A stretch of 64,000 nt of DNA, taken from Auanema rhodensis. Taxonomy: Eukaryota > Animalia > Nematoda. The DNA is taken from assembly GCA_964057225.1 (NCBI GenBank), contig OZ059896.1:8680001-8744000 (forward strand), read 5' to 3'. The position numbers and the translations under genes were made by a program. Shown in pieces: positions 1,373 to 57,516 of the stretch (position 1 is the stretch's first letter; every line of letters begins with the position of its first letter). Below the pieces are notes generated by a model. It had not been told where the DNA came from and searched no databases. It worked only from the letters and a program-made list of their open reading frames with translations.

Positions 1373-2797
1373 GACGAAAAGCTACAAGCTTTCGGGATAC
1401 CCTAAAGCAAAAAAACCATTATAATGCATAATTATAAACACGATAACAAATATATGAAGAGTTGCTAACAATCCAAAGCAGATATACGTAAATTAAATAC
1501 TCACAAAACAGAAAATCTTTTAAAAAAAGGGGGCATAAATTTGGGATTCAAGGGTATTTCTACTATGAAAGTGTTGAATGGGTTACTGTAAAATGACCTT
1601 CGTGGTGGGACCAAAAATTTAACTTTGACGCCCTTGAAACATTTGAAAACTCAATTCAATAAAAAATTATTGTATACTGGAGCATTGTAAAACCAACTAT
1701 TTACCAAGGAATTAAACAATATAACATTTTAACATTTATCCTAGAATACTACAGAATTGCAGGTCGCAGCGAGTCCTTAGATTTTCGAGATGAGTTAACA
1801 GTGGTAGCAAATATAGTGCAGCTATTATTTTTAGAAGTTTGGATAGAGGGTCTTGGTTTATAATAAATTTAATTTAAAGAAACCTCTAAGAATAATCATA
1901 CTAAGCCAATAAACTTGCACTTGGGCTGTACTTTCTTGCAGGTTGAACCGAAATTCCAAAATGATCCTTCCACTCCTTGTTCCAGTTTTTATTTGCTTTC
2001 CAACCATTCTTCTGAATTCATAGTCTGTTTTAGTTCAGTTATCTGAGCTCTAGCTTCAGCTAGCTTTAAATATTATTTTTTTCCATGTACCTAAGATATT
2101 CATGTGGGTCTTATTGGAGTTTATATAACTAATTTTATTTCGCAGGTTGTTGTTTAAAAGTTCTATGTGATGCTTGTAGAAGTTGAAAGAATACTTCATG
2201 AGTTAAAATAACAACTATGTTATGATGTTCAGTTTACCTTGATTCTTATTTTATCACAGTCTAATCGCAATATTGAGACAGCATCTATTGTTTAAATTCA
2301 GCCTTTGCCTTTACTCTCAGTGTTGCAATAAGACTAGTTCTATTACCCCCAGTGTAGAATAAGAAAATGGAATGACCCACTTCTCAATTTTGTAAACGCA
2401 TTATTATGTGTGAGCATAGAATATATTGCGATTTTACAATATCTTACTACATTGCATTTTGTCCCACTGAAGCTTGTGAATTCAGCATTATAGGAAATTT
2501 TCTAGGCTACCTCCATGTGTTTAAAAACTACCTTAGTAACCACTTTTATGGAGTTGAGAGTGCCGTCTTATGAAAGATTTGTTGTCGCTTGGCAATTAAT
2601 GTCTTTCTCGATTTTTAAACTTGCAGATGTACTTGATATCAGCAAGTTAAGGCGCACTTCTCACGATATTTAGTTTTTTCTCGAAAGTGGTATTTATCTC
2701 ATTTTCTTTGTTGCTTTCTGTTTCCAATCCTATCCGCCATTTGTTTCCTTCAGCTTTTTTATAACATTGAAAATCCACATGCGTGTTACAGTTAGCT

Positions 2798-5700
2798 ATG
2801 CTAGATACTCTCTCAAACAGGACATGCTTCATTTGTGGTCAAGCCTGTCTCAATGATGCTCTATTATTTGTACATTTTCAACAAAATCATCCTAGAGAAT
2901 TGCTCACACTGTGTTTCAAGGTTTGTGAATGTCTCATTATTGCAATCATTTTGTTCTCTATTAGCTTGTTGGGAAGCTAAATCAAAATGACCAAGGAACT
3001 GTCGTTATTGATGAAGAAGATATTACTACAAAACTAAAAGCAACTAAATACTCCCTTAGTAATATTGATGATATACTAGCGCATTCCCTACATCAAGAAC
3101 CACGATCCAGAGCAAAAAGCTTCACGTCTGGCAGTTCGGATAGGCGAAGAAAACGAGTTAGACGTTATGCTCATCCAGTATGGTCTTACTTTGAAAGAAT
3201 GGATCGGTTTGACTGCGTCTGTTTATTATGTAATGGAGTTGTCCGGTCTGCTTGTTCTACTAACTTAAGCAGACACATGAAAAGGTATATTTTTTTTAGT
3301 TGATATGATCGAACAGTGTATAAAAAATCTAATCAAAGATCACTGAATTGATTCTCAATCACTTTCTTTCGCTAGTTCTGAACTATTTCACAGCTCATTT
3401 TGACTTTTTATGTAACTATTTATACTAATCATATTTCGAGAGGTTATTTTTCAGGCATCACCCGGAAACGGCGCTTCTGATGTGTCGCACTCGCGAAGCG
3501 TTGTTACTGTCCGACACATCATCGGATACCGACGAGAGCATGAAAGTTTTGGATAGCGATGAGAAGAAAAGAAGAAAAACGATAGAAGATCAAGTTGGAC
3601 TACGAGGACGACGACAGTACATGGGCGGATCCGATAGCCAGAGTCAATCGGACGGCCTGACCGTCCCTGCAAGATTATCGACAGAAGGCAAAGACCCATC
3701 TCTTCGTGTTGATCACTACCCACATTTCCACAACGACTCTGAGTGCCAGCAAGAATCTATTAAGCAGCTACTATTATTATCAACCACTCTTGACACTCAA
3801 CAGACACCTCAACGAAAGGACTTGGACGAAGACGAGAATATTTCGGCTGGTGTAGCTTGCTCAATTCCCAAGGAGAACGTGAATACATCTGTAGCAACAG
3901 ACATTACACGATTACTTCTTAAGAAGCGAACGATGAGCACATCAGGAGCCGTCGGTTACCTGAATAGTACTACACCCGCCCCTATACAATTAGGTTCGGC
4001 GGCTGCTTCCAGTACATCTTCTCCGTCGGCTCTTCCGTTGATTTACCAGTCCGGAAATCCGTTTATGAATGATAGTAGTATAAGCCCTTCTTCTGCTTCT
4101 ACCACTACTTCCTCGTCCAGTGCTTCGTCATGTGTCTTGAATCATGTGTCGGTTCCTCAGGCTCCAAATTCTGGGGCTGTATTATCTTGTCCTGTACCTC
4201 TTCATCCGTATTCTTTGGCCCCTGTTCAACCGCCGGTTGTTACTTCAACCTTAACTCTCGATTTATCGTCCCCTTGGTGCTCTTTTCCTACATATCCTGA
4301 TATTCGTCACATTGAGCAAGTTTCCTATGATCATGACGTTAGTATCAATTGTTAATTAAAAGTTTTTGAATTTAAAACATAATATCTTGTAAATATATTG
4401 ATTATTTCTGAATTTCAACACAGAATATCCAAAATTTTGAATGCATTCTCTAATAAGTTTGTTAGATTACTTAATAGCTTGTATTCAAATATTCCAAATA
4501 AACAATAATTGTAATTGTTCGTTTCCTTTCAATGCTCATTTTTCATTTAGATTCCGTATACTAATATTGGCACGGAACCAAAAATTGATCAAATGAAGTA
4601 TGATTTTGCTGATTTAAGGGCAAAACAGTTTGAAGAAACTCGATTGTATCATAAGGTGCTTTTTTCGTTTATTTGTATATATTCTAGTGAATTATTCATT
4701 CCAGCAGCAAGAGATTGTAAACTTATCAGCAAAAGAAAATGGAAAACTTTTCGAGGAGAAAGACGATGTCTCAGATAGATCTGCTCAAAATTCTTCAGAC
4801 ACTACTCCTCCTGCTAAACGTGGACGACCAACTGAAAATCCATGCTGGAGTTATTTCATACGTTTGGATGATCAAAATGTTCGCTGCCGTCTGTGTACAA
4901 AGGTTAATTTTCATTCAAAGTATTTTTTTTAACGAATTGAAACTATTCTCAGTTGTGATTTTTGGAATTTTATTTGTTGATTCTTATCTAACCATGCATT
5001 ATGTCGGTCTTTTACCAAACCAGGCTACTTGTTGTCCGAAAAGTGGGCTATAGTTTGCACCTAAACACTAAATTGAAAACCAGAGATACGATATAGAGGT
5101 CAATTAACCATATCGAATTTTTTTGAAACATTTTATTCCAAATTAGCTCCAGAAACATTAAAGTTAACTATATATATATATAAATATATATGTATATACC
5201 GTATTCAATAATGGGTGTGACCTCTCTCATCCCCCTAAAATGGTAGATATATCCTCTACGGTAATTCGACCCACTTACGAGATTAGATCAATCCAAGCAG
5301 CTGAAGCACCAAATCTCTCAGTAATCAACATTCAGCTTTGTTCCCTTTTCATTATACCTGAATCACTTCGACTTTTGAAACTTTTTTAATCCAAAAAACG
5401 TTTTCTTCTCTTTTCGTTTATCAGTTGGGTAGAGCGAACTTTTCCAGATAGTCGTTGAGGTCTCGTGATGCATCTTATTTCGAAGCAAAAAGAGTTGAAT
5501 CGGGTTAGGCCTACAGATTGCCCGAGGGCGCACCACCAGGTTTCTGGGCTTTGTTCTAAGAAACATACCACCTTCATTCTCTTTCAACCGAATTTCAAGA
5601 ATTAGTTTTCTATTATTGATTTATCGGCGATTGTTTAATGAAAAGACAAGAAAGATATCTGGGAAGAAGACAGCTAATGGCCTTGATAGCAAGTTGAAAC

Positions 5701-6737
5701 ATGGAAATTGACCTAATTCGGATAGAAAAAGGACTCTTATCCATCTTTAGGTTAAATAGAACAGCAAATAAGCAACTTCAAGAAACAGAGAAAAATTATC
5801 TGAAGTTGTGGGTGAAAACCGAATAACCTTGTTTATCTTTATAGGTCGTAAAGTCGGCTTGTGCCACCAACATGACCAAACATTTGGAGCGTCATCACCA
5901 TCAAGATTATCAGCATTTGATTATTCAAATCAAGCAATATAGGTAAAGTGAAAGACAACTTGTCTCATGAAACTAACGGCACTATTAGGTTTAGAACTCA
6001 GAAAGGACCCAATATACAACATAATACTTCTGATCAAAATCATTTGAGTTCTAATATCATGAACTCTGTAAATCCTGTGAAGACAGAAATTTTTAACGAC
6101 ATCTATGGCACAGGATTTGATACTACAGAACATGTATTCCGTAATTTTGGAGAGTATGAAAATACTGTAAAACATTCAAAACATAAAACTTAGTAACTTG
6201 TGTTATTAAGGAATCAAACGGATGGCAAAGAACTACATGGTCAGGGGTAAACCAGTGGCCTGCCCATCCTCATGATTTGACTTCCGCATCAACAGAACAA
6301 GAGACGAATATTTCTCGCACACATAGTAAGTCATTAACAGATTCATACTAGGCATCTAAATATATGATTTCTTCTATCTTGCATTGCTTCAGATATGAAC
6401 ATAGTTACAAAACCTCATCAAGTCACAGAGTGGGCACAAGTTGCTCCACCTGTTTCCGGTAATACTCGATCGGGAGAAAAGGCATACCTTAAAAGAAATA
6501 GGTAAGGCTTAACGAGAAATCATAAAATATGCCAGTATTTTCAGGAAAACTGAACATCCCGTATGGGAATATTTTAAGCGAACGGCCGATGGCAACGCCC
6601 AATGTACAATTTGTGCTGGAATAGTGAAAAGCCCCTGCTCCTCAAACTTTATGCGTCATCTTATGCGTCATCATTCTACCGAATATAATAATGTATATGT
6701 AAAATGGGTTGAGAAACGGGGTCCTAATAAATTTTAG
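2798..6737 (+). CDS. bed-3: BED zinc-finger transcription factor (one C2H2 plus three BED fingers), bed-3-like
   Basis: CFICGQ...HFQQNH; BED motifs HPVWSYF...CLLC...STNLSRHMKRHH, NPCWSYF...CRLCTKVVKSACATNMTKHLERHH and HPVWEYF...CTICAGIVKSPCSSNFMRHLMRHH; long Ser-rich exon 3455-4319; no transposase domain seen. Confidence 0.8.
5169..5198. repeat. (TA)n microsatellite in bed-3 intron
   Basis: tatatatatatataaatatatatgtatata. Confidence 0.8.
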
Positions 6738-7217
6738 GAACAGTCTTCGGTATAACACATAATCTGCTTTCACGGGTTCACAACTCTTTCTGCCCCTTAC
6801 TTCTAATTTCTAATAATAAAATAATATTTATACCTATTTGGTACATCAGAAAACCTTTCTATATCTTAATGTGCAATTGTTGTAAACTTTCATAGTCATT
6901 CCATTCACTGTCTCATATATCTTACGTTTTTAATTTTTCAGATAGCTTTCTTACCCAAGTTTACTAAATAGAAAATTATCTTAGTTATTATTCATAAAAC
7001 CCAAAAAACCATATAATCTTCGACTATATATATGTAAAGGGTATTCATTCGCTTATTACCTCATTTATATATCTAACGGTGCCTTCCCTTAAAGATTTCA
7101 TATACTTCCACTTTTCTGATTTGTTGTCATTTTTTTATAATAAAATGAACATATAAGCGCTGAAAAATCATTTCATACGTTCAGAACACATAACAAACTA
7201 CAATTTGAATGAGAACA

Positions 7218-8742
7218 CTAGTTTGCTTTGGTTTTTAAAAGATTAGCGTCGCGACCAGCCCGATATTGAAGAATTCCTTTGCACTTGTGTACCAGATAAT
7301 CAAGCTTAATATTATACCACAGGAAACGAGCGAAAAAGTCATAATTGATCTCAGACTTGTAAGCGTATGGAGTTCCCTCATATGGCTTCAAAACATCCTT
7401 AATTCCCTGAGTAGCTTCGACGAGATGGTAGTGGGGAATTTTGTTGAAGAAATGATGAACGACATGGGCTACAATGGATGATGTATGAAGCTAAACATGA
7501 AGAAATATATCCATACCATCTGTGATGTTGTGCATAGCGTTATCTAATCCAAAGCCATATGTGCGATCGATAGTTTGAGTTTGTCCACGAACGAAAGACC
7601 ATTCATCGTGTTCGTAAACCTAAATATCATAAAAATTAAATATAAACAAATTGATAAGAATGACTGACCTCAGCTTGTTCATCTGTGTGCTGTAAATAAG
7701 TGACAATAACTAGCATGCATCCATAGAAGGAAATTGGAATTGCATAGTACTTGACGAAAGTGAAAAGATCAGATCCACAAATCAAAAAGGCAATCTGATG
7801 TTAATTCATTGTATGCAAGAAAAAGATAAGTAACATACGTAAGCACATGCTGCACAGAGAGCACCACTGACAACGCATTGAATGCGTTCTTGATTGCTCT
7901 TAAAGAGTTTTGAATAAGGCCAGAAATGAGATCCATCACTGTACCCGAACACAGTATAAACTGGGAACCATCCAAAATAATAATCTTTTAGTATGATGTA
8001 ATTAATATTCACTTACTTTACCCAACCAGAAAGTGGGAAAGCATTAAAGTGCTTCATCCAGAATGGCCAAGTAACCCAATGTTTTTCTTGATTCCAAGGA
8101 TGCCCCATGTCCTTATCAATATGATTGGTGAACTAAAAAGTAAAAATAAAAAGCACATTATAATAAAAAATGTTACGGTATGATGCAATTTGTGACTTTT
8201 TTGCCAGGGAAAATATGGAGCTAACAAAGGTGCAAATGCAATATGTCCACAAATGTCATTAATAAGCTCAGACTCGGAAAACGATCCATGAAGGCAGTCA
8301 TGTCCAACAACAAATAAAGAAAAACCAAATACACCCATAAGGCAATACCTAAAACCACACCATAGTTCAGAAAATAGTTCAAACCCTACCAAGAAAATAG
8401 ACCAAAGAGTCCTCCATAATATTCGAAATAAGAGACAGTAAAGAAAAGTGCAGTAAGTATAGCGTAGTCCTAAATACAAATAATAAAAAAAATAATGAAA
8501 TGCAAAAAAAACCTGAACAAGATATCTTAAAGAAGTAGTAAGATTTCTTTCGAAGCAATGCTTGGGGATAGCACGTCGGAAATCATCTACTGACGGCAAC
8601 TTTGGCCGGTCCTAAAACATCCCCAGTTACACGAATAATAATATATACTAGTACTAACCTGACTCTTAAGAGTTTCAGTGGCTCTATCAGCCTGATCCTT
8701 TAAGGGTCGGACGGTAACCCCGTCTGCGGCATGAGCTACCAT
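7218..8742 (-). CDS. fat-1: Omega-3 fatty acid desaturase (FAT-1/FAT-2 family, FAT-1 type)
   Basis: MVAH start; His boxes HDCLH, HKLHH, HVVHH; [29 protein letters not shown] and [10 protein letters not shown] match FAT-1. Confidence 0.9.
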
Positions 8743-9850
8743 ACCTGAAATTGTAAAAAGTTAAAACAACTGAATTTTATAAAAAAAACTAAAATGAACA
8801 GAAGGAAAAGTTTAAAACTCGCGAATATAAATATGAAAATTCAAACTAAAGCACAAATAACGTTAAGACGCATCTAGCATTTTTCCCAATATGTTACAGC
8901 GACACCAGAAATGCGTCTGCTGGGCAGATCTGGCCATTTTGATAAGATTTGTACTTTGAAAGAAAACGAAAAAAGGTATAGAAGGACAAGAAATATCAAG
9001 TACATATATTTTATTAACAGTTATTTTCACTGAAATTTGAGTTTCTATGAAAATAAAAATATTCAATACATCTTCTGATATAAAAATATTTTAATGCTAG
9101 TTTTTTTGCGAAATATAGACTAAGCTTGACCAGAGCAACTGAATTGGTTAAACAAGAAGAAGGGGCAAATCTGACAGGAAGTAATAGATGAGAGCATTCA
9201 AGAAAATAGAGTGAAGAGCAAATAGAAAAAATGCTTCGAAAGAAGAGTGTTGAAAGTCAGCGTAGCAAAAACGCCCGGACACAGCTATTGCGTGTTCTCT
9301 GCTCTAGTTGAACCCGTTAGACCAAAGGCCGAACTTTAGCAGACATTTGTTCCCAAATTTTAGATGATAGATTCTAGAAAAGCGTTTCCTCAAAAAGAAT
9401 GGAAAAGCATTGATTTTTTCCTTTTATTCGTCTAATTCGCCCAAAAAAGGTTCAAAATAGAAAGAAAAAATTAATCACTGCGTAAGTGTGCTTCCCAAGG
9501 TTAACAAGGAAATCAGTATTAAAATCTTTTAGAAAACCAGGAAAGGAAAACGATAACCTTCTAATCTATTGCGCCGTATGCCCTATAGCACCTATCACTC
9601 TTTGCCAAAGTTATTATCTTATATTATAAAGTGCATCCAAGAAGTATTTAATTTTCCGAGACCTGACAGTTAACGATCATGTTAAATTTTGAACGAGTGA
9701 AGTTCTGCACCCAGTGTATAATGAGATCACGTTACAAGTACAAAACTTTTAGTCTTTGATATTTAATCTCATTTAGTTTCTTAAAATCTAAAAAAATATT
9801 ATTTTTAATAAATAAGTATTTATTATAAGATATATAGTACGAGTATCTAT

Positions 9851-11060
9851 TTATTGTGTTTTTCCTGCAGCCTTGAGATATTTCTTTCCTCCTTTATCAA
9901 TATATGACTCCTTGTAGAACCTGTTTTAAAAAAATAAAAAAACGCAAATATATGAAAAACTAACTGAATCCAAAGAGCGAAGTATGTTACTAGCATGAAA
10001 ACTCCTAAGAACCATCCCTTGAAAGTTACAGCATACTTTTCAGCAGATAGTAAACTTGCAACTCCAACATGCAATTGAGCTGCGATAGCAATAGCAAACT
10101 AATAGAATAATAATGATTATAACTTCTAATTTATAAAATATTTACCTGAACCATCTGACCAGTTGTGATAATTTGAGCTAGATGGGCTGGAACATGAATT
10201 TTAAGAGATTTTGCAAGGTAATATCTATAAATATAAATTTTCGAACTAATTTTCATTATAATCTGAACTTACGAATACATAAAGGCATGAATGATATAGT
10301 TCATCCATACAACCCAGAACATATGAGCATTGTCCTCGTGATAGCAAACAAGAGCATAATATCCAGTGAAGGCATGATGATACCTATTCAATAAATCATG
10401 TTAGTTAATGCTTTGTAGTTAATTTTTTGTTACCAATGCATGAACATTAAAGGTTTCTTTCTTAATACGATAAAAATGGTATCAATCAACTCAGGAATTT
10501 TGGAAAGAACCCAGAGCAAAACCCAATATCCGCATGATTTATCTGTCTGAAGTTCAGAAATATGCAGATGAACGTCTAAAAAAAGCATATTTGAAAGAAA
10601 ACTGAATTGTAAATCAGTACGTCCAATTCCTTTGTCAGCTACTACTCTAAGAAAAAGTGGGAAGGTGAATAGGAATCCAAGAAGTGAAAAAGTTGCTAGA
10701 ATTCCATTCCATATATTTAAAGGTACTAAAATTTTAAAATTATATCCAAATAAATGTTTTTTATATGAATTTCTCACATTGAAGATCAAAAGGTTTTCTA
10801 TCTCTCATATAGTATTTAATAGAGAAAACCACTGCCATATAAGCAACAGCTAACTTGATAGAAAAAGTTTCCAAGCTTAAGCAATAAGCTTTTGCTTTTT
10901 CATAGTTAAATTCATCAAATAAAATGGACAAAGTAGATACCTGAAATTAGGATGCTTCAAACATTTATTTTAAAATAATTCAATTTTTTATCTCATCAGG
11001 AGGGAGTATGACATATAACAGAATCACCGGAAAAAAACTTTTAATACTAACCTCAGCCAT
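9851..11060 (-). CDS. elo-5: Fatty acid elongase ELO-5 (monomethyl branched-chain FA)
   Basis: [77 protein letters not shown]. Confidence 0.92.
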
Positions 11061-11118
11061 TTTTTGATGACAGAATTTCAATTACCGCCAGATTAAGCAT
11101 ATAGAGGTACTTGATTTT

Positions 11119-11157
11119 CTTATATAGGTGAGTTAGAGTGGTCCCATATCACCCCAC
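11119..11157 (-). promoter_or_regulatory. elo-5 core promoter: TATA box and canonical SRE-1
   Basis: TATATAAG on minus strand at 11126-11119; exact ATCACCCCAC at 11148-11157; E-box CACGTG at 11222-11227. Confidence 0.65.
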
Positions 11158-12102
11158 ATCATCAAAACAGCTGACAAGAAATTTGTTGTCAGGAGATAAG
11201 CCTCATCTGTATGGAGATGTTCACGTGTATAATGGCAGGTACGGAAGAAGGTATACATAACTGAATGTTTCCACTATGAAAATGCTAATGTAGTAAAGTT
11301 TCGTAAATGTTCAAAGCATAAGTATTTATAACATTGTTCCTTTTTTAGATTATAGTAACAGTACCAATGATGCTTTATTCAAAATATTTTAACAATCAAT
11401 GGCAACAATATTTTCATATGGGCAAAACAAACTAGTGCATAAGCCTTGCATAAGGATTTAGATGTCATAATATGTGTAAAATACATTGTTAAAAACTTTG
11501 TATCTATTAAATATGTTTTCTGATTTTTTAAATTAATTTTTAACTTAATTCCAATGTAAAATTTTTACTTCTACTGATTTAGTTACCTCTTATCTCATCA
11601 CCCTTTTCTTTGATATGGTGCCATCGTTAATTCTCAATAAAATTTCTTACCATCACAAATTGATGAAAACTCACAATCTATTGTGAGAAAATAATAGTAA
11701 TTTTGCAATGAAAAACTTTTCTTCAATAATATTATATCATTACAAGAAATAAATGCATAGGTATGATGGATCATTCACTGCTGAAAACGTGGCGTACCTT
11801 TATCTTTTTCATTTTTCCCTCTAATCAACAAATTTGCAGAGAGAACTTTGTTCTAAAGTGAAACTTTGTACGAATTATAAGCACGATATGGCCCTGTAGC
11901 TGTCAGCAATTTTGCAGCAGGTCCGTACTTTGTACGAAATTATTCTTATCTATGTGCTAATATTTTCCTGAGATTACCGTACCACAAAACAAAATAAGAA
12001 AACAACAATATTATTATATTCTAGTTAATACATCATTATGACAATTTTCGTGAACACTACGAGCTCAACAGTAACTTAAGTAATCTTTCGAGAATAGAGT
12101 AT

Positions 12103-49700: not shown

Positions 49701-51234
49701 AATAATTGTTAAAAATACCTTCATATCTCTGAATGGATGAAGAGTAAGACCAAAAGGCAGTCTACTTTTCTTGAGTAGCTCTTCTGTCTGAGGAATAGCG
49801 TTAAGAGTGCTTCGAAACACACTATAACATCATAATAAAGTTTAAAATGAAAAAGAAAAGGTGAAACCTTGGATCTACTCTAGCTTTATTATTAGCCATT
49901 GTTTCAGGAAGATCATAAGCAATTTCTTCATTGAAATGTTGTATAACATTACGATCTGTCATTAAATCCACGAAATTACTCACAGGAGCTTGCCCAGCCC
50001 AATTATTAGGTTGATTTGAAATATTCTAAATAAAGAATTATTATTTTGCTGACGATACAAAAAAGCACCATTTGACCAAAAGCTTGTTGCGTTTGAGAAT
50101 ATCCCATTGCATTGGTATGTTGATACCCTGGAGCGGGTTGGGCATAGTTAACAGCATGATTAGGAGGGATGCCAGGAGCACCTTAAATTTAAAAAAATGT
50201 AAATACCTATGTAGACAACAAACCCTGCATGTTTGGAGGCTGGGAATTCGATGAAACCGGAAGATTTTGGACAGGCACCTAAAAATGACACATCATAGTT
50301 TGATGATAGTAGTGTTAACTCACATTTTGAAGTTGGGGAGTATAAATAGAAGAACTCGGCTGATTTGGTAGTCCTCCACTAATATTAGGAGTACCTGGAT
50401 GTACACTCGGGGGGAAAGAATTCACAGGAGGTTGAGAAGCCGCTAGATTAGGAGTTTGACTATACGATGGCACCGTAGGAGTTGCAGAAGTCGTAAATTG
50501 TGCTCCCGGAGGAGAGGAATGTTGACCGGTAAAAGGCATTGGTGGCATCGCAGGAAATCCCTAAATTAAACGTTTTAATTGTCGTTAAAAAAATTTAAAA
50601 ACCTGAGATGCTGCGCTTGGGTAATGAACAGAAGGCGGTCCAGGTTGGGGCGGTCCCTAAGAAAACATGAAATCTTTATAGGCTTATCAATAAACTTACA
50701 GGTCTAACAGCTGACCCATTAGGCGTCGTAGCTACAGGAGCATTTTGTTGCAAGTAAGGCTTAAATGCTGAGGGTTGCTGGTTTGATCCTGCTATTGGAT
50801 GATTCTTAAAACATTTAACGTAAAGAAAATGGTTTAAAATAAATTTAAAATTTTCACAAGAAAATTAAAATTGGTAATAAAAAAAATACTACAAACTAAA
50901 ATAAAAACAAACAAGCAAACTAAAATAAAAAACATAAAATACAAAAAAACTTACTAAGCGAGGTTGAGGCTGTGTAGGAAACGCAGGTACACCATTAGCA
51001 GCAACTGATGGAAATGCTGGAGGTTTAAAAGTTTGTGGTGGAGGTGCGCTAAAAAATTACATATTTTAGGGATTGAAAATATAAAAAAACTAGCCTATTG
51101 TTTACAGAAGGTGGAGGGTTTTGTGAGTTAGGAATTTGCCCAGGAGCTGGATATGGATATGGATTTGATGGCTGTACATAGCCTAGCTTCTGTGGCCACT
51201 CCCCTGTTCTGTTCCCAAAATTAGGATCTGCCAT
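46748..51234 (-). CDS. sec-24.2: COPII cargo adaptor Sec24 (SEC24A/B type)
   Basis: Pro-rich N-terminus; LPFGLTLHPFRD; zinc finger CKYCRTYINPF...CNLC; EFIAPSEYMLRPPQP; GFEAVLRIRCS; FQAALLYTSSKGDRRIRVHT; SYIEFLQHIKRE. Confidence 0.93.
48677..48692. repeat. (TA)n microsatellite in sec-24.2 intron
   Basis: uninterrupted TA run. Confidence 0.8.
49264..49296 (-). CDS. Candidate 33-nt cassette microexon of sec-24.2 (PVRKNLEGINE)
   Basis: TTTTAG acceptor, GAG|GTTAGT donor, phase 0/0 and stop-free, inside an unusually long (about 256 nt) intron. Confidence 0.6.
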
Positions 51235-51657: not shown

Positions 51658-54600
51658 ATGCAAAACGGGGAGTCAAAGGAGAATGGGGAGTATAAGGAAC
51701 ATTATGGAAGTGGAGCTGGTCTACCTTTGACAAAGACTGACAAGAATGATGGGAAGAAGATGCTTACTAATGGTTAGTCTATGTATTTGTCATCAAATAT
51801 TTTTGTCTCAAATTCTTTTGAAAATTAATAGTTTTTTTTAATGTAGGTTTAACGAGAACTCATCGGCTTTTAACAGAAGAAGAAATAGCACAAGGGAAGC
51901 CTGCTCGGTGGACCGAGTTGGAAATTCACGGTTTTTATAAGCTAATTTTTAATTTAATTTTTTTTTTGAAGGACGAGTTAAAAACCTTTCAAGTTCATTG
52001 TGGAGAGTTCAAAATCTTTCAGCTTTGTTTTTAAATGGAAATCAGCTTACTAAGGTTCCAAATGAGATTGCTCAGGTTTGTTTTCTTTAGTTCATATTCT
52101 CTTAATTTAATATTTAGCTTCGAAATTTGACTATGCTTGATTTATCACATAACAAACTGAGGACTTTACCAGCCGAGCTTGGTGATATGATTTCTCTTTG
52201 TCATCTTTATTTAAATCATAACCAGCTTCGAGTTCTTCCTTACGAGTTAGGAAAGTTGTTCCGGATCCAAACACTCGGTGAGTGGAACTGTTTTGTTTAG
52301 TTTTTTATTCCATTACTTTCTTTGCTATCATTGTCTTGTTCAAGATTTTTATATTGGACAATCTTAATTATTATTCGCTTTTTTCGTCAACATTTGATTA
52401 GTAAGCAATCACGAATTTGCTTATCACTCGCTACAGTTAAATCAGTGATAATGTTATCTTCTAAAAACTTTAATCTTCTAGTACTGTCAGTAGTTAATAT
52501 TGACAGTTTTATAAAAATTGTTTTTTACAAGCACTGGCTGTCTAGTAGTGAAAAAAAAGTATATGAATTACGTAATTTATTAAAATATTTCAGGATTACA
52601 AGGAAATCCTCTTTCTCCGGAAATTAATAAGATATATCATGAAGCTAACGGATCTTCAAAGCTTTTGCAGTTCTTACTTGATCATTTAGCCAGTAAGTTC
52701 ATTTTAGTTTTCTTCATGTTATTTCTATGATGATTCGTGCTCTCTTTCTCCGTTGTTGTCTCCAGAACGCTTCTTTTAGTATTTATTTGCTTCTGTTTTC
52801 TGAATCGTGAATAGCCTTATTGAGTTTTGGCTAGTTTCTCTATCTGTCTAGGGTATATGTGGCGCTCGCGATGGGCGGGACGCGGTCTGTTGCCGCGTTA
52901 TTTACCACAGAACGACTAGACCCCGCCTCTTAGGGTGCTATCATTGTATTGGCGTGGTGACTACTAAATTTTCTTCTTGCAGCTGCTCTCTGTCATAGCA
53001 CCAGCGTAGCTTTACCTTGTATTCATTTCCCCCATTGCCCTCATTTTTAGAATATCGAAATGTCCTGTTAATTGCTCGGTGCCCGTTATGTCGGACTGTA
53101 GTCGACACGGGCACCTCCGAACGGAGAGACAAAAATCGTGTTCTGAAACTACCTCATATTCTTCCTCATCATCTAGTTCACCTGGCTGCTCTAAAGAATG
53201 TTCGAATGGAGTTAAAGGTATTGGAAAACGCTATGCGCGAAGAGCCAAACGCTGGGCTGAACTACAAAATAGACGTAGCGGTACAGGAAGTGGACAAAGA
53301 AATTCTGGTCCACCTGAGCCTCCCCGAGTCTGTGATTTCGTCGAGCTAGCCCGAATGGGATCTGGCATTCTGCAAACCAATGAATCTAGTCATTTTTATT
53401 TGCCATCGGCGGGTCGTCGCTCTTTACCTTTTTCTATACTACAACCTCGTCGGCAAGAATATCAAGTATATTATCCTTCATATGAGCAACAAAATCAGCC
53501 TGTATACGTAACCAGGCGAACTAATGATTGTGGACAACGTAACTATATTTCTGTATATCAAGCGCCACCTGAATTGACTGTATATCCTGTACAAAATTCT
53601 ATATTTTCGACTGGTAATAAAATCGATCGGTCTTCTTTACTTCTGTCTGAACCCTCTTCTCCGGAATCACTTGACACACTCTCATTATTGACTGCGGATC
53701 TTGGTGCCACGTCTATATCGTCTCCAAGTTCCTCACTAAGTACTTCCTTCTCTAGTCAAGAAGCTGAAGATTTCCTACCATATTCACGTGTTCGTCATCT
53801 CTCTTCGGATTATCATGGTAATCAATTTATTGCTAAACGGTTTTTCTTAGTTAAACGAATGTACGAATTGTTACTAACTTTATTCATCACACCCCAATTT
53901 ATTAAAAAAGATTATTTTGTGCAAACTTGTTTCTAGCCCTATTTTGTAATTAAAAGCTTAAAGCTTTGCATTATTGTTGTGGTGTCCTTGGTTTCGGAAA
54001 ACCATTAGAGCTATGTCCCAATGACCTAGACTCACGCAAATCGTCCTGATGAATTTGTTCCATTTTTCATTGTATGAGGCTCGCCCTTGACTTTTCCGTA
54101 TTTGCTTCAAGAGGAATAGGTTTGGATTATTTTCTAGACTTGGCATTTTCAAATTGATTTAAGTTTTGAAAAGGTTGCGTGAAGAAACTGGGCTTTCTCA
54201 AATTCCATGAAATGTTTTACTAATGGAACAGACTGTCGATTTTTCCTTTTATGGGGGGATAAATATCTCTTTATTTCTGGGTTCTGAAGGTTATTGCTTG
54301 ATCGTGAAGCCGCACTTTCAAAGCAGCTCGCTCTTTTATCTCTCCTCTTTCGGTCCGATTCGTTTTCCTTTGATGGGTGTTCTGCGAACAAGAAAATGCT
54401 TGTCTGCTTAGGAGAACAGTGAATTAAACCAAAAAAAAAAATGAATAAAGCAAATATAGCATAAGTCAATGCAAATATTTAAATTTGATATAATGTTTTC
54501 AGTTAACACTCATCCTCCACCGGATCGTAATTGGGTTATGATAAGACATGCAGATCCTGATCGAGCAATAGGTTTGTTTTAATTTTCTAATCACTTTTTC

Positions 54601-57516
54601 TAAATGTTTCTTCTTATTTACTGCAAAACATTGTCAAGTTTTGTGTTTACTATGTTGTTTCGAATTTCTATGCCTATCATACATGTGGCTTTACGGTGGA
54701 ACAAGGCTAAACGTGTTTCTCTTTAGTCAGGCTTCTGCGCTAAAGTAGGGCCAGTTGCAAGCAAAAGCTGCTGTTGACTATTTTGTCATATCCTTATTAG
54801 TTGAATAATTTATTGAGAAAAAAGTTCGAATTCTTGAAATATACTTTTCATATCTATCAAAGTTTTTAATTATCATGTTTTTTGAAACCAAATCGGAGCT
54901 TGATATGAATTAAATAATGTTTATTCTCTGGAAAAGTATCAAAACTAGATGTCTATAATTTCAGCGACATTCACAGTACTTTGTTACAATGTGTTATGCG
55001 ACAAATATGCAACTGTTAATCAGTATTCATATTGTCCGTCATGGGCTTTAAATTGGGAATATCGTAAGGTGAACATCATGAAGGAAATACGAAACTATGA
55101 AGCAGACATCATTACGCTACAGGTTTGTAAGCATCTATTATTCCTGCGTCGCTAGGATCCTTCTTAAGCTTAAGCTAATCCGAACTTTTCTTTTTCCTCA
55201 CTGCTAGAATTCTAGATTTTTTGATCGATTTCTTTTCAAATATATATTCTTGAACATGTTTTCTTACTAAACACTTCTGTAATAGTATGGAAAGGAATCC
55301 ATATGTTTTATTAGAAATGTTTTCTCTATATCTTTGAAATATTTATTTTAAAATATTTTAAGTGTATTGTCATTCATAATGTTTTTCAAAATGTTATCAT
55401 AACATTTTTCAGGAAGTCGAAACTGAACAATTCCATCTGTTATTCCAACCAGAACTAAAGAGTCTTGGGTACAGTGGTATTTTCTCTCCGAAGTCTCGTG
55501 CAAAAACTATGAGCGAAGAAGAACGAAAGTATGTTGATGGTTGTGCCATATTCTGGAAAGCTGATAAGTGGGTTTTGCCTAATTTCTTTATTAATTAAAA
55601 ATATTCCTTTATTTTGCTGATTTCCAAGGCTCTTTGCATTATATTGTTAGCACTACGTGTCTGGGGAAACTACGTTGTCGCGCAAGAAAAGTGATGATGC
55701 GTGTGGGGATGGAGATTGCAAAGCAAACTCTAGAAGCGTTCCGTCAACACCTTTTGTTATGACCGTTTTCGTGTAGATCCTTTTTCGTGGGGAATCCGTT
55801 TCCTTCTGAAGGAAGCGGTGACACTGTAATCGCTTAGATACCTGAGACGATATAAGTGTTATTTTCAAATGTTTTTAACTCTAACAATCTAATGCAAAGA
55901 ACCTTGGAAAAGTTTAGAAAGGGGTTATAATTATAGTAATTTATATACTCAATACAGAAAGCAGACAAAAATTTGCTTTTTAGGTTTGAAATGGAAAAGC
56001 AACATCTGATCGAGTTTACATCATTGGTCATGAAAAAAGCCTCGTCATCTGAACATATGCTTAATAGAGTTATGCCTCGCGATAATATTGCTCTTTGTGC
56101 TGTTTTGAAGATCAGGGAAAATGTATATCCAAATAGTATGTATTTTCTCTTTGGTTTGTGAAAATATCCAATTTTGTACTAGGGCGAGTTGGAATGAATG
56201 CTACCGATAATGTGGTCGGCAGTCCGCTGGTCGTTTGTACTGCTCACATTCATTGGGATCCGGAATTCTGCGATGTTAAACTGGTTCAAACTATGATGCT
56301 GGCTCATGAGTTATATAAGCTTGTTGAAGAGGTGTACATTATTTCACTTTATTTTTTTACCGATTTGTTCCAGGTAGCAGAACAGTTTCACATTACAACA
56401 CAGCAAACACCTGTTCTGATATGCGGTGATTTGAACTCGCTCCCTGATTCTGGTTAGTTTTTTTCTGAACTTACTCTATGCTTTCAATTATGACTGCTTT
56501 ATCACTGGCTTGATTTCATTTCGTAGCATTGAATTTGAAAACAGAGCACTGAATGATTTGTATGCTCATATAATTCGGTGTATTTTTCCATTTGTTATTA
56601 TTGGCTTAACTATATAATAGACAAATTGAGAATATAGCACTCCTCAAGAAGATGAGCTGTGCTGGTGTCAAACTGTTTGTTCACGTTCCTTCTGCTGAAG
56701 CGTGGATCGTGTACGAGCTCATAAGCGGCAAAGTCTGCATCTCTTTCTATCCTTTATGTTTGCACTCTTTATTTGGTTGCGCATGTCGTGTCGCACTTTT
56801 CACGAAAACGAGAAGAGCTAGAAGAGGGATACGGTCCACTTCCGAAAAAAAATTTTTTTTTATTATTTTTCCAAGCAAGGGAGGGTGGTCTGGGGAGCAT
56901 TTCTCTTAATGTTTTCATTATGCTTAGTAATAAATAAGTGTTCTTTTTTTTTCCTTATCTTACTTTTCCAATATTTCAGTAAATGTGACTTATTTTTAGG
57001 TGTTTTTGAATTCTTATCTCGTGGAAAGGTTTTCCGAGGACATCAGGACTTGAAGGGATTCCGAGATGATAACACATTAGAGAAATTCTCATCTTCTTGT
57101 GATCCCACAAATCTTATGCATAATTTGCGGCTGGAATCAGCTGTTGATCAAAATACAATACCTTTCACGAATTATACGTATGTTTATATTTCACGAATAT
57201 TTCTTAGTAGTGCTTGTAGGTTGGAATTTAAAGGAATGATTGATTACATTTTCTCAACACCACAATCTCTGGCACGGCTTGGTATTCTTGGATCTTTCGA
57301 ACAATCATGGATTGCCAACAACAAAATTCTTGGTTTGAAGTTTTTCTAACTCTTTGGATTTATTTGATATTTTCAGGTTTTCCTCATCCTCATGTTCCAT
57401 CTGATCATGTTCCAATTATGGCTCAATATGCCATAATACCAACAAGTCATCAAAGAAATCATCCTCCTGTACACAATCCTCACAATTCAATGATGACCAT
57501 GGGCTTTCAGCGGTAG
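51658..57516 (+). CDS. ccr-4: CCR4 (CNOT6/6L) deadenylase, LRR plus EEP nuclease
   Basis: LRRs (LDLSHNKLRTLPAELG, LQGNPL); FTVLCYNVLCDKYAT, ADIITLQEVE, HIHWDPEFCDVK, CGDLNSLP, IDYIF, PSDHVP. Confidence 0.97.
53088..53817 (+). CDS. Candidate alternative first exon of ccr-4 (about 243 aa, Ser-rich/basic) giving an LRR-less isoform
   Basis: TTTTTAG at 53050, ATG 53088, long open frame, donor CATG|GTAAT at 53818 in phase 1, matching the phase-1 acceptor at 54502. Confidence 0.7.

Follow-up and report, generated by a model that had tools for sequence, protein, structure and literature searches.

EEP deadenylases that lack an LRR are known from a number of organisms and include Nocturnin, ANGEL1/2 and PDE12, the yeast proteins Ngl1-3 and the CCR4s of plants (PMC3870282). 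CCR4 binds CAF1 through its LRR, which keeps the enzyme on CCR4-NOT (reviewed in PMC3870282), and the LRR-less enzymes just listed are believed to work apart from the canonical nuclease module (PMC3870282). Among nematodes, products with an Exo_endo_phos domain and no LRR are annotated in Caenorhabditis angaria (CAI5447297.1, 628 aa), Steinernema hermaphroditum (KAK0398026.1, 597 aa), Pristionchus fissidentatus (663 aa), Pristionchus mayeri (653 aa) and Ostertagia ostertagi (582 aa), and Ancylostoma ceylanicum has both isoforms annotated at one locus, the LRR-less isoform being Y032_0587g345. All of these are automatic models named 'hypothetical' or 'poly(A)-specific ribonuclease', for which no functional description was found in the literature.

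The orthologous gene of C. elegans is ccr-4 (ZC518.3), with isoforms a, b and c. The isoforms CCR-4a/b are named in PMC5389717 and ZC518.3c is named in PMC4232591; no discussion of an LRR-less isoform was found in the literature on C. elegans ccr-4.

In the current analysis a window of 64,000 nucleotides from the contig OZ059896.1 of the nematode Auanema rhodensis has been considered, the plus strand of which, from about 51.6 kb onward, encodes the nematode ccr-4 gene, a deadenylase of the CCR4/CNOT6 type. This gene very probably has two alternative 5' ends, the internal first exon yielding an LRR-less nuclease isoform and the second reading frame that overlaps it being a matter of chance. The features of the locus, with the evidence for each in brackets, are as follows.

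51658..52692, plus strand: 5' exons of ccr-4, coding for the N-terminal part and the LRR domain (Pfam, PDB search, RNA joints)
52693..54502, plus strand: intron of the canonical, LRR-containing mRNA, 1810 nt, housing the alternative first exon (GT..AG joint 52692>54503 in all four runs)
52865..53087, plus strand: transcribed leader upstream of ATG 53088 (contig starts and continuity across 53050)
53051..53349, plus strand: overlapping +1 frame of 99 codons, open here and judged non-functional (translation, shuffles, relatives, RNA joints)
53088..53817, plus strand: coding part of the alternative first exon, 243 codons and 1 base, with a phase-1 donor (RNA joint, homologues)
53818..54502, plus strand: intron of the LRR-less mRNA, 685 nt (GT..AG joint in all four runs)
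54503..54571, plus strand: shared exon, xNTHPPPDRNWVMIRHADPDRAI, which accepts the donors of both first exons (two joints converge on 54503)

The exons of ccr-4 were searched one by one, and longer relatives were reached through database proteins. Exon 52127-52273 has LRR_8 and LRR_1 matches in Pfam and corresponds to residues 84-130 of CNOT6 in the search of the PDB. RNA joints at 51772>51847, 52075>52118 and 52277>52594 connect the 5' part of the gene, and the last LRR exon (52594-52692) ends in a phase-1 donor with its GT at 52693. On the other side of the large intron the joint 54571>54965 leads from the shared exon into the EEP nuclease exons, which start from 54965. Exon 54967-55119 is most similar to residues 31-81 of CNOT6L (3ngn; E = 8e-22), followed by CNOT6 and yeast Ccr4 (4b8c), whereas ANGEL2 and PDE12 score far weaker, and the Pfam family PF03372 (Exo_endo_phos) is matched on this side of the gene. 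The join 52692>54503 keeps the frame (...DHLA-I-NTHPPPDRNW) and gives the ordinary CCR4 architecture. The gene is placed in the CCR4/CNOT6 type on these grounds, its EEP nuclease being closest to CNOT6, CNOT6L and yeast Ccr4 and its LRR and nuclease lying on one mRNA. The intron between the two domains had been singled out, in an earlier sequence-only reading of this DNA, as 1.8 kb long among introns of about 45 nt; it is the largest in the gene, but not a lone outlier, the other introns of ccr-4 measuring 316, 393, 290, 416 and 547 nt.

That reading had further proposed that the intron holds a segment of dual use behind an acceptor at 53050. Cis-splicing from the LRR exons would read it in one frame into an LRR-only protein, and its use as a first exon, from ATG 53088, would read it in another frame onto the nuclease. 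The elements themselves are all present in the DNA, namely the donor at 52693, the AG at 53050, two open frames, a uORF of 3 codons and a donor at 53818 leading onto 54503. In frame 0, a run of 243 codons starts at ATG 53088 and leads to a phase-1 donor, the exon ending at 53817, and the acceptor of the following intron ends at 54502. Both first-exon donors (52692 and 53817) are in phase 1 and are spliced to the same acceptor (54503).

The RNA data are assembled contigs of near-identical sequence from four runs (X1-X4) of one study, which are read as RNA because they are spliced at GT..AG sites throughout the gene; the comparison with them covered 5,901 nt of the window. Assembly drops rare variants and short tips, and the RNA nature of these contigs is inferred from the spliced joints. 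The joint 52692>54503, from the LRR to the nuclease, occurs in contigs with depths of 406, 46, 63 and 286 in the four runs, and the joint 53817>54503, from the middle exon to the nuclease, in contigs with depths of 23, 69, 76 and 14. The proposed use of the segment with ATG 53088 as a first exon spliced onto the nuclease without the LRR is borne out by the latter joint, which is seen in all four runs. The contigs of the middle exon reach upstream to 52865, 52995, 52948 and 52924 (X1-X4), that is, they begin 55-185 nt upstream of 53050 at four different places, and have no upstream joint in any of the four runs; all of this evidence is at the level of contigs and comes from one study. No RNA was found over 52693-52864 in the contigs of the four runs. 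Since the middle-exon contigs run unspliced and continuous across 53050, the exon acts like an alternative first exon whose 5' end lies within the intron. The LRR-less isoform is accordingly characterised by an exon that is nested in the intron and spliced in phase, by its own 5' end at the contig level, and by a product carrying the conserved motif and downstream blocks described below.

The contig depths of the LRR exons and of the alternative first exon stand at 406/23 and 286/14 in X1 and X4 and at 46/69 and 63/76 in X2 and X3. The ratio differs by about 25-fold between the two pairs of runs and suggests a sample-dependent choice of promoter; contig depth is a poor measure, and the difference is recorded as a lead. 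Use of the middle exon as an in-frame cassette, with the LRR donor spliced into frame 0, was also considered and rejected: every AG in 52981-53130, inspected by hand, leads into the wrong frame or to an immediate TAG at 53007, and no such joint was seen. The gene model of Heterorhabditis bacteriophora fuses the LRR in frame to the alternative exon and ends in the intron, and the C. angaria annotation has two genes in place of one ccr-4, the first for the LRR (234 aa) and the second for the nuclease (628 aa; locus region 1501-12023). Both look like errors of gene modelling caused by the nested first exon; the fusion in H. bacteriophora, if real, would point to use of a cassette exon in that species.

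No Pfam family was matched by the 243-aa product of the alternative exon. A word search with it matched the model of H. bacteriophora (50% identity) and two anonymous contigs, and a search with the C-terminal part of that model led to proteins of Ancylostoma ceylanicum, Heligmosomoides, Ostertagia, Oesophagostomum, Pristionchus and Anisakis; a word search with residues 45-110 of a database protein (P0006) added only a second Pristionchus protein. A profile search of 1.84 billion representatives gave 24 proteins at E<=1e-3, all of them of this N-terminal family, and its named members add Caenorhabditis angaria, C. auriculariae, C. nigoni, C. remanei, Diploscapter pachys and Steinernema hermaphroditum. 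All members that carry a name come from nematodes, and on these searches the region appears to be confined to nematodes, in which it spans clades III, IV and V. The motif of the alternative exon is carried by the C. elegans congeners C. nigoni, C. remanei, C. angaria and C. auriculariae. One of the C. elegans ccr-4 isoforms is likely to be the LRR-less form.

The hallmark of the family is a nearly invariant motif, GKRF[AV]RRA[KR]RWAELQQ[RK]R, at residues 46-63, in which 15 positions are invariant in the alignment. Weaker conserved blocks lie around RRSLPxSI, NEYG..xxISVYxxPPxLTVY and LSLITxDLSxTS. The strongylid proteins all start with MSDG, and the closeness of the A. rhodensis start, MSDC, supports ATG 53088 as the initiation codon. 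The order of the last LRR exon, the alternative exon and the first exon of the nuclease side is the same in A. ceylanicum and P. fissidentatus. An AlphaFold model built on the 24-sequence alignment is mostly disordered (mean pLDDT 57), with a helix at 45-65 over the motif (pLDDT up to 96), a hairpin at 139-158 and a short helix at 196-204. A disordered N-terminus with a basic helix and two short elements looks, in this model, like a set of linear motifs for interaction or localisation. The motif resembles a basic nuclear-localisation or bZIP-like stretch, and one UniRef entry of the family has been automatically named 'BZIP domain-containing'. A feature search of the ESM Atlas gave a single match of 0.75, to an unnamed arthropod cluster, which was treated as noise.

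The annotated nematode products introduced at the outset are the closest known counterparts of this isoform. They share with it the GKRF..RWAELQQ motif and the later blocks, and in them too the N-terminal region leads into (V/I/L)NT.PPP and the EEP nuclease without an LRR, but outside the motif the identity to the A. rhodensis product is only 23-51%. The suggestion of the sequence-only reading that such an isoform may already be annotated elsewhere has proved correct, for C. angaria, Pristionchus, Steinernema, Ostertagia and Ancylostoma. The LRR-less isoform does exist in A. rhodensis; its kind is annotated in other worms, and no functional study of it was found. Nocturnin, ANGEL1/2, PDE12, Ngl1-3 and the plant CCR4s resemble it in having a CCR4-type EEP nuclease without the LRR that docks on CAF1. 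They are, however, products of separate genes, whereas the A. rhodensis isoform uses the nuclease exons of the canonical CCR4 by way of an alternative promoter, and the N-terminus that replaces the LRR is unrelated to theirs and restricted to nematodes.

A model with two 5' ends can be outlined from these observations. From the upstream promoter would come the canonical mRNA, with LRR exons and nuclease connected by 52692>54503. A second transcription unit would start inside the 1.8-kb intron, with RNA from at least 52865; translation would begin at ATG 53088, and the phase-1 splice 53817>54503 would lead onto the shared exon. The predicted product has a complete EEP nuclease in which the LRR is replaced by a 243-aa, largely disordered region with three short conserved elements, foremost among them the putative basic helix of the GKRF motif. 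As it is the LRR that docks CCR4 on CAF1, this isoform is probably unable to take the usual place in CCR4-NOT, and the conserved helix with the other short motifs would direct it to another partner or compartment. It is possible, though the proposal is a tentative one, that it represents an ancient deadenylase (clades III-V), separately regulated and acting outside the CAF1-tethered module, with the basic helix leading it to another partner or to the nucleus and with a choice of promoter that differs strongly between samples (LRR to alternative exon depths of about 18-20:1 in two runs and about 0.7-0.8:1 in two).

The conservation of an isoform that keeps the nuclease and exchanges the LRR for a nematode-specific region with an invariant helix suggests that the CCR4 enzyme has a further use, either untethered or tethered in another manner. 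Should a deletion such as ccr-4(tm1312) take out both forms, the isoforms would not be told apart by the usual mutant phenotype, and isoform-specific alleles could therefore change the reading of ccr-4 phenotypes.

The leader of the alternative exon (52865-53087) is more likely to be a 5' UTR than an outron. It contains two upstream ATGs, at 52871 (20 codons) and at 53060 (3 codons), the latter being the uORF ATG-TCC-TGT-TAA at 53060-53071 already pointed out from the sequence, and an AG at 53049-53050 that follows a run of T and is unused or unproven as an acceptor. The segment 52865-53090 folds no better than its shuffles (MFE -54.2 kcal/mol, z = 0.29), and no Rfam match was obtained over 52600-54600 at E<=1. 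The GC content is 0.44-0.50 over 52850-53150 against about 0.32 in the flanks. Seen by eye, the GC-rich island at 52850-52950, just upstream of the alternative exon, holds GGGCGGG and CCCCGCC strings; in C. angaria the string CCGCCC is found at two places upstream of the alternative exon (about 5860-5930 of the locus sequence), and the strongylid loci have a conserved CACGCCCC block in common. These GC-box-like CCGCCC/GGGCGG strings and the strongylid CACGCCCC block may be elements of an internal promoter. Alignment of the upstream DNA revealed blocks kept among strongylids and no convincing alignment of these with the A. rhodensis window, and no conserved promoter element is claimed beyond the GC-box-like strings.

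The overlapping +1 frame (KYRNVLLIARCPLCR...) is open from 53051 to its stop at 53347-53349 and remains open for 86 codons from ATG 53088. Among 20,000 synonymous-codon shuffles of the frame-0 protein, 5.2% show no stop in the +1 frame over 86 codons or more from the ATG, and shuffling the order of the codons gives P = 0.033 for this length. A run of at least 99 codons in an alternative frame appears somewhere in the exon in 16% of the synonymous shuffles. The shuffle value of P = 0.05 stands before correction for the many windows read. Two open frames do lie behind the AG at 53050, but the extent of their overlap does not exceed chance. In eight relatives the +1 frame extends 20, 0, 20, 81, 34, 22, 57 and 18 codons after the ATG (median about 21) and is closed 0-16 codons upstream of it, so that translation coming in from an upstream acceptor would soon end. 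Alternative-frame runs of 44-128 codons elsewhere in the exon recur in the eight loci (80-128 in most), and such open runs are therefore common in this sequence family. The +1 frame has its own first ATG only after the main ATG 53088, and the +1 peptide has no match in Pfam. On the explanation preferred here, the second open frame after the AG at 53050 has arisen by chance.

Three other explanations of the locus have been weighed against two alternative 5' ends. The most elaborate is that of the sequence-only reading, in which the AG at 53050 has a double role: cis-splicing would give the LRR with 99 aa, as a CAF1-blocking decoy or NMD substrate, and trans-splicing the LRR-less enzyme, the choice between them forming an autoregulatory switch through a dual-coding segment. 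Both frames are open, the AG follows a run of T resembling the nematode UUUUCAG consensus, and some automatic annotations elsewhere give LRR-only or LRR-plus-exon models. The cis joint 52692>53051 on which the LRR-only protein depends was, however, found in none of the contigs of the four runs, from which rare junctions can escape, whereas both other joints are present in all four; the contigs of the LRR exons and of the alternative exon are unbranched, and the former run straight into 54503. None of these contigs puts the +1 frame into a translated context. In each of the eight related loci a stop soon interrupts the LRR-only frame, and no T-rich acceptor before the ATG comparable to that at 53050 was found in the strongylid, Pristionchus or C. 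angaria loci. The idea of an LRR-only decoy made from a dual-coding exon fails in conservation, in comparison with chance and in the RNA, and the switch, left without support by the missing joint and the unconserved frame, appears to be largely refuted by the comparison with relatives; we consider it very improbable.

The division of the locus into two separate genes, one for an LRR protein and a downstream one for a nuclease starting at 53088, would follow the C. angaria gene calls, with their neighbouring LRR product of 234 aa and nuclease product of 628 aa. In A. rhodensis the joint 52692>54503 ties the LRR exons to the nuclease exons in every run, and with the higher contig depth in two of them; an LRR with a nuclease is also the canonical CCR4 architecture, as the CNOT6 and CNOT6L matches indicate. 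The two-gene explanation is already refuted for this genome by the RNA joints, and its probability is practically negligible. A less distant alternative retains the same LRR-less isoform and differs in its mature 5' end, which would be formed by SL1/SL2 trans-splicing at 53051, making the RNA of 52865-53050 an outron instead of a 5' UTR. An AG some 37 nt upstream of an ATG is typical of nematode trans-splice geometry, and that at 53050 stands at this distance in a good acceptor context provided by the T-run. The starts of the four contigs at four places are as tapering low coverage would give, and a 22-nt SL tip would probably be clipped in assembly, which makes the lack of loose ends uninformative. 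Against this, the upstream RNA is part of the same contig in all four runs, while the rest of the intron is empty or at a depth of 2-3, and an equivalent acceptor is absent in the relatives. Trans-splicing at 53051 is on balance unlikely, and two alternative 5' ends, with the leader read as a 5' UTR, remain the preferred explanation.

Two minor observations concern the surroundings of the alternative exon. Short RNA contigs (156-159 nt, depth 2-3) without joints were found within the intron 53818-54502, at 54224-54415, in three of the four runs, and could be remnants of pre-mRNA or a small separate transcript. The minus strand at 50315-51234, just upstream of ccr-4, has proline-rich and Q/S-rich open frames that look like exons of a divergently oriented neighbour gene.
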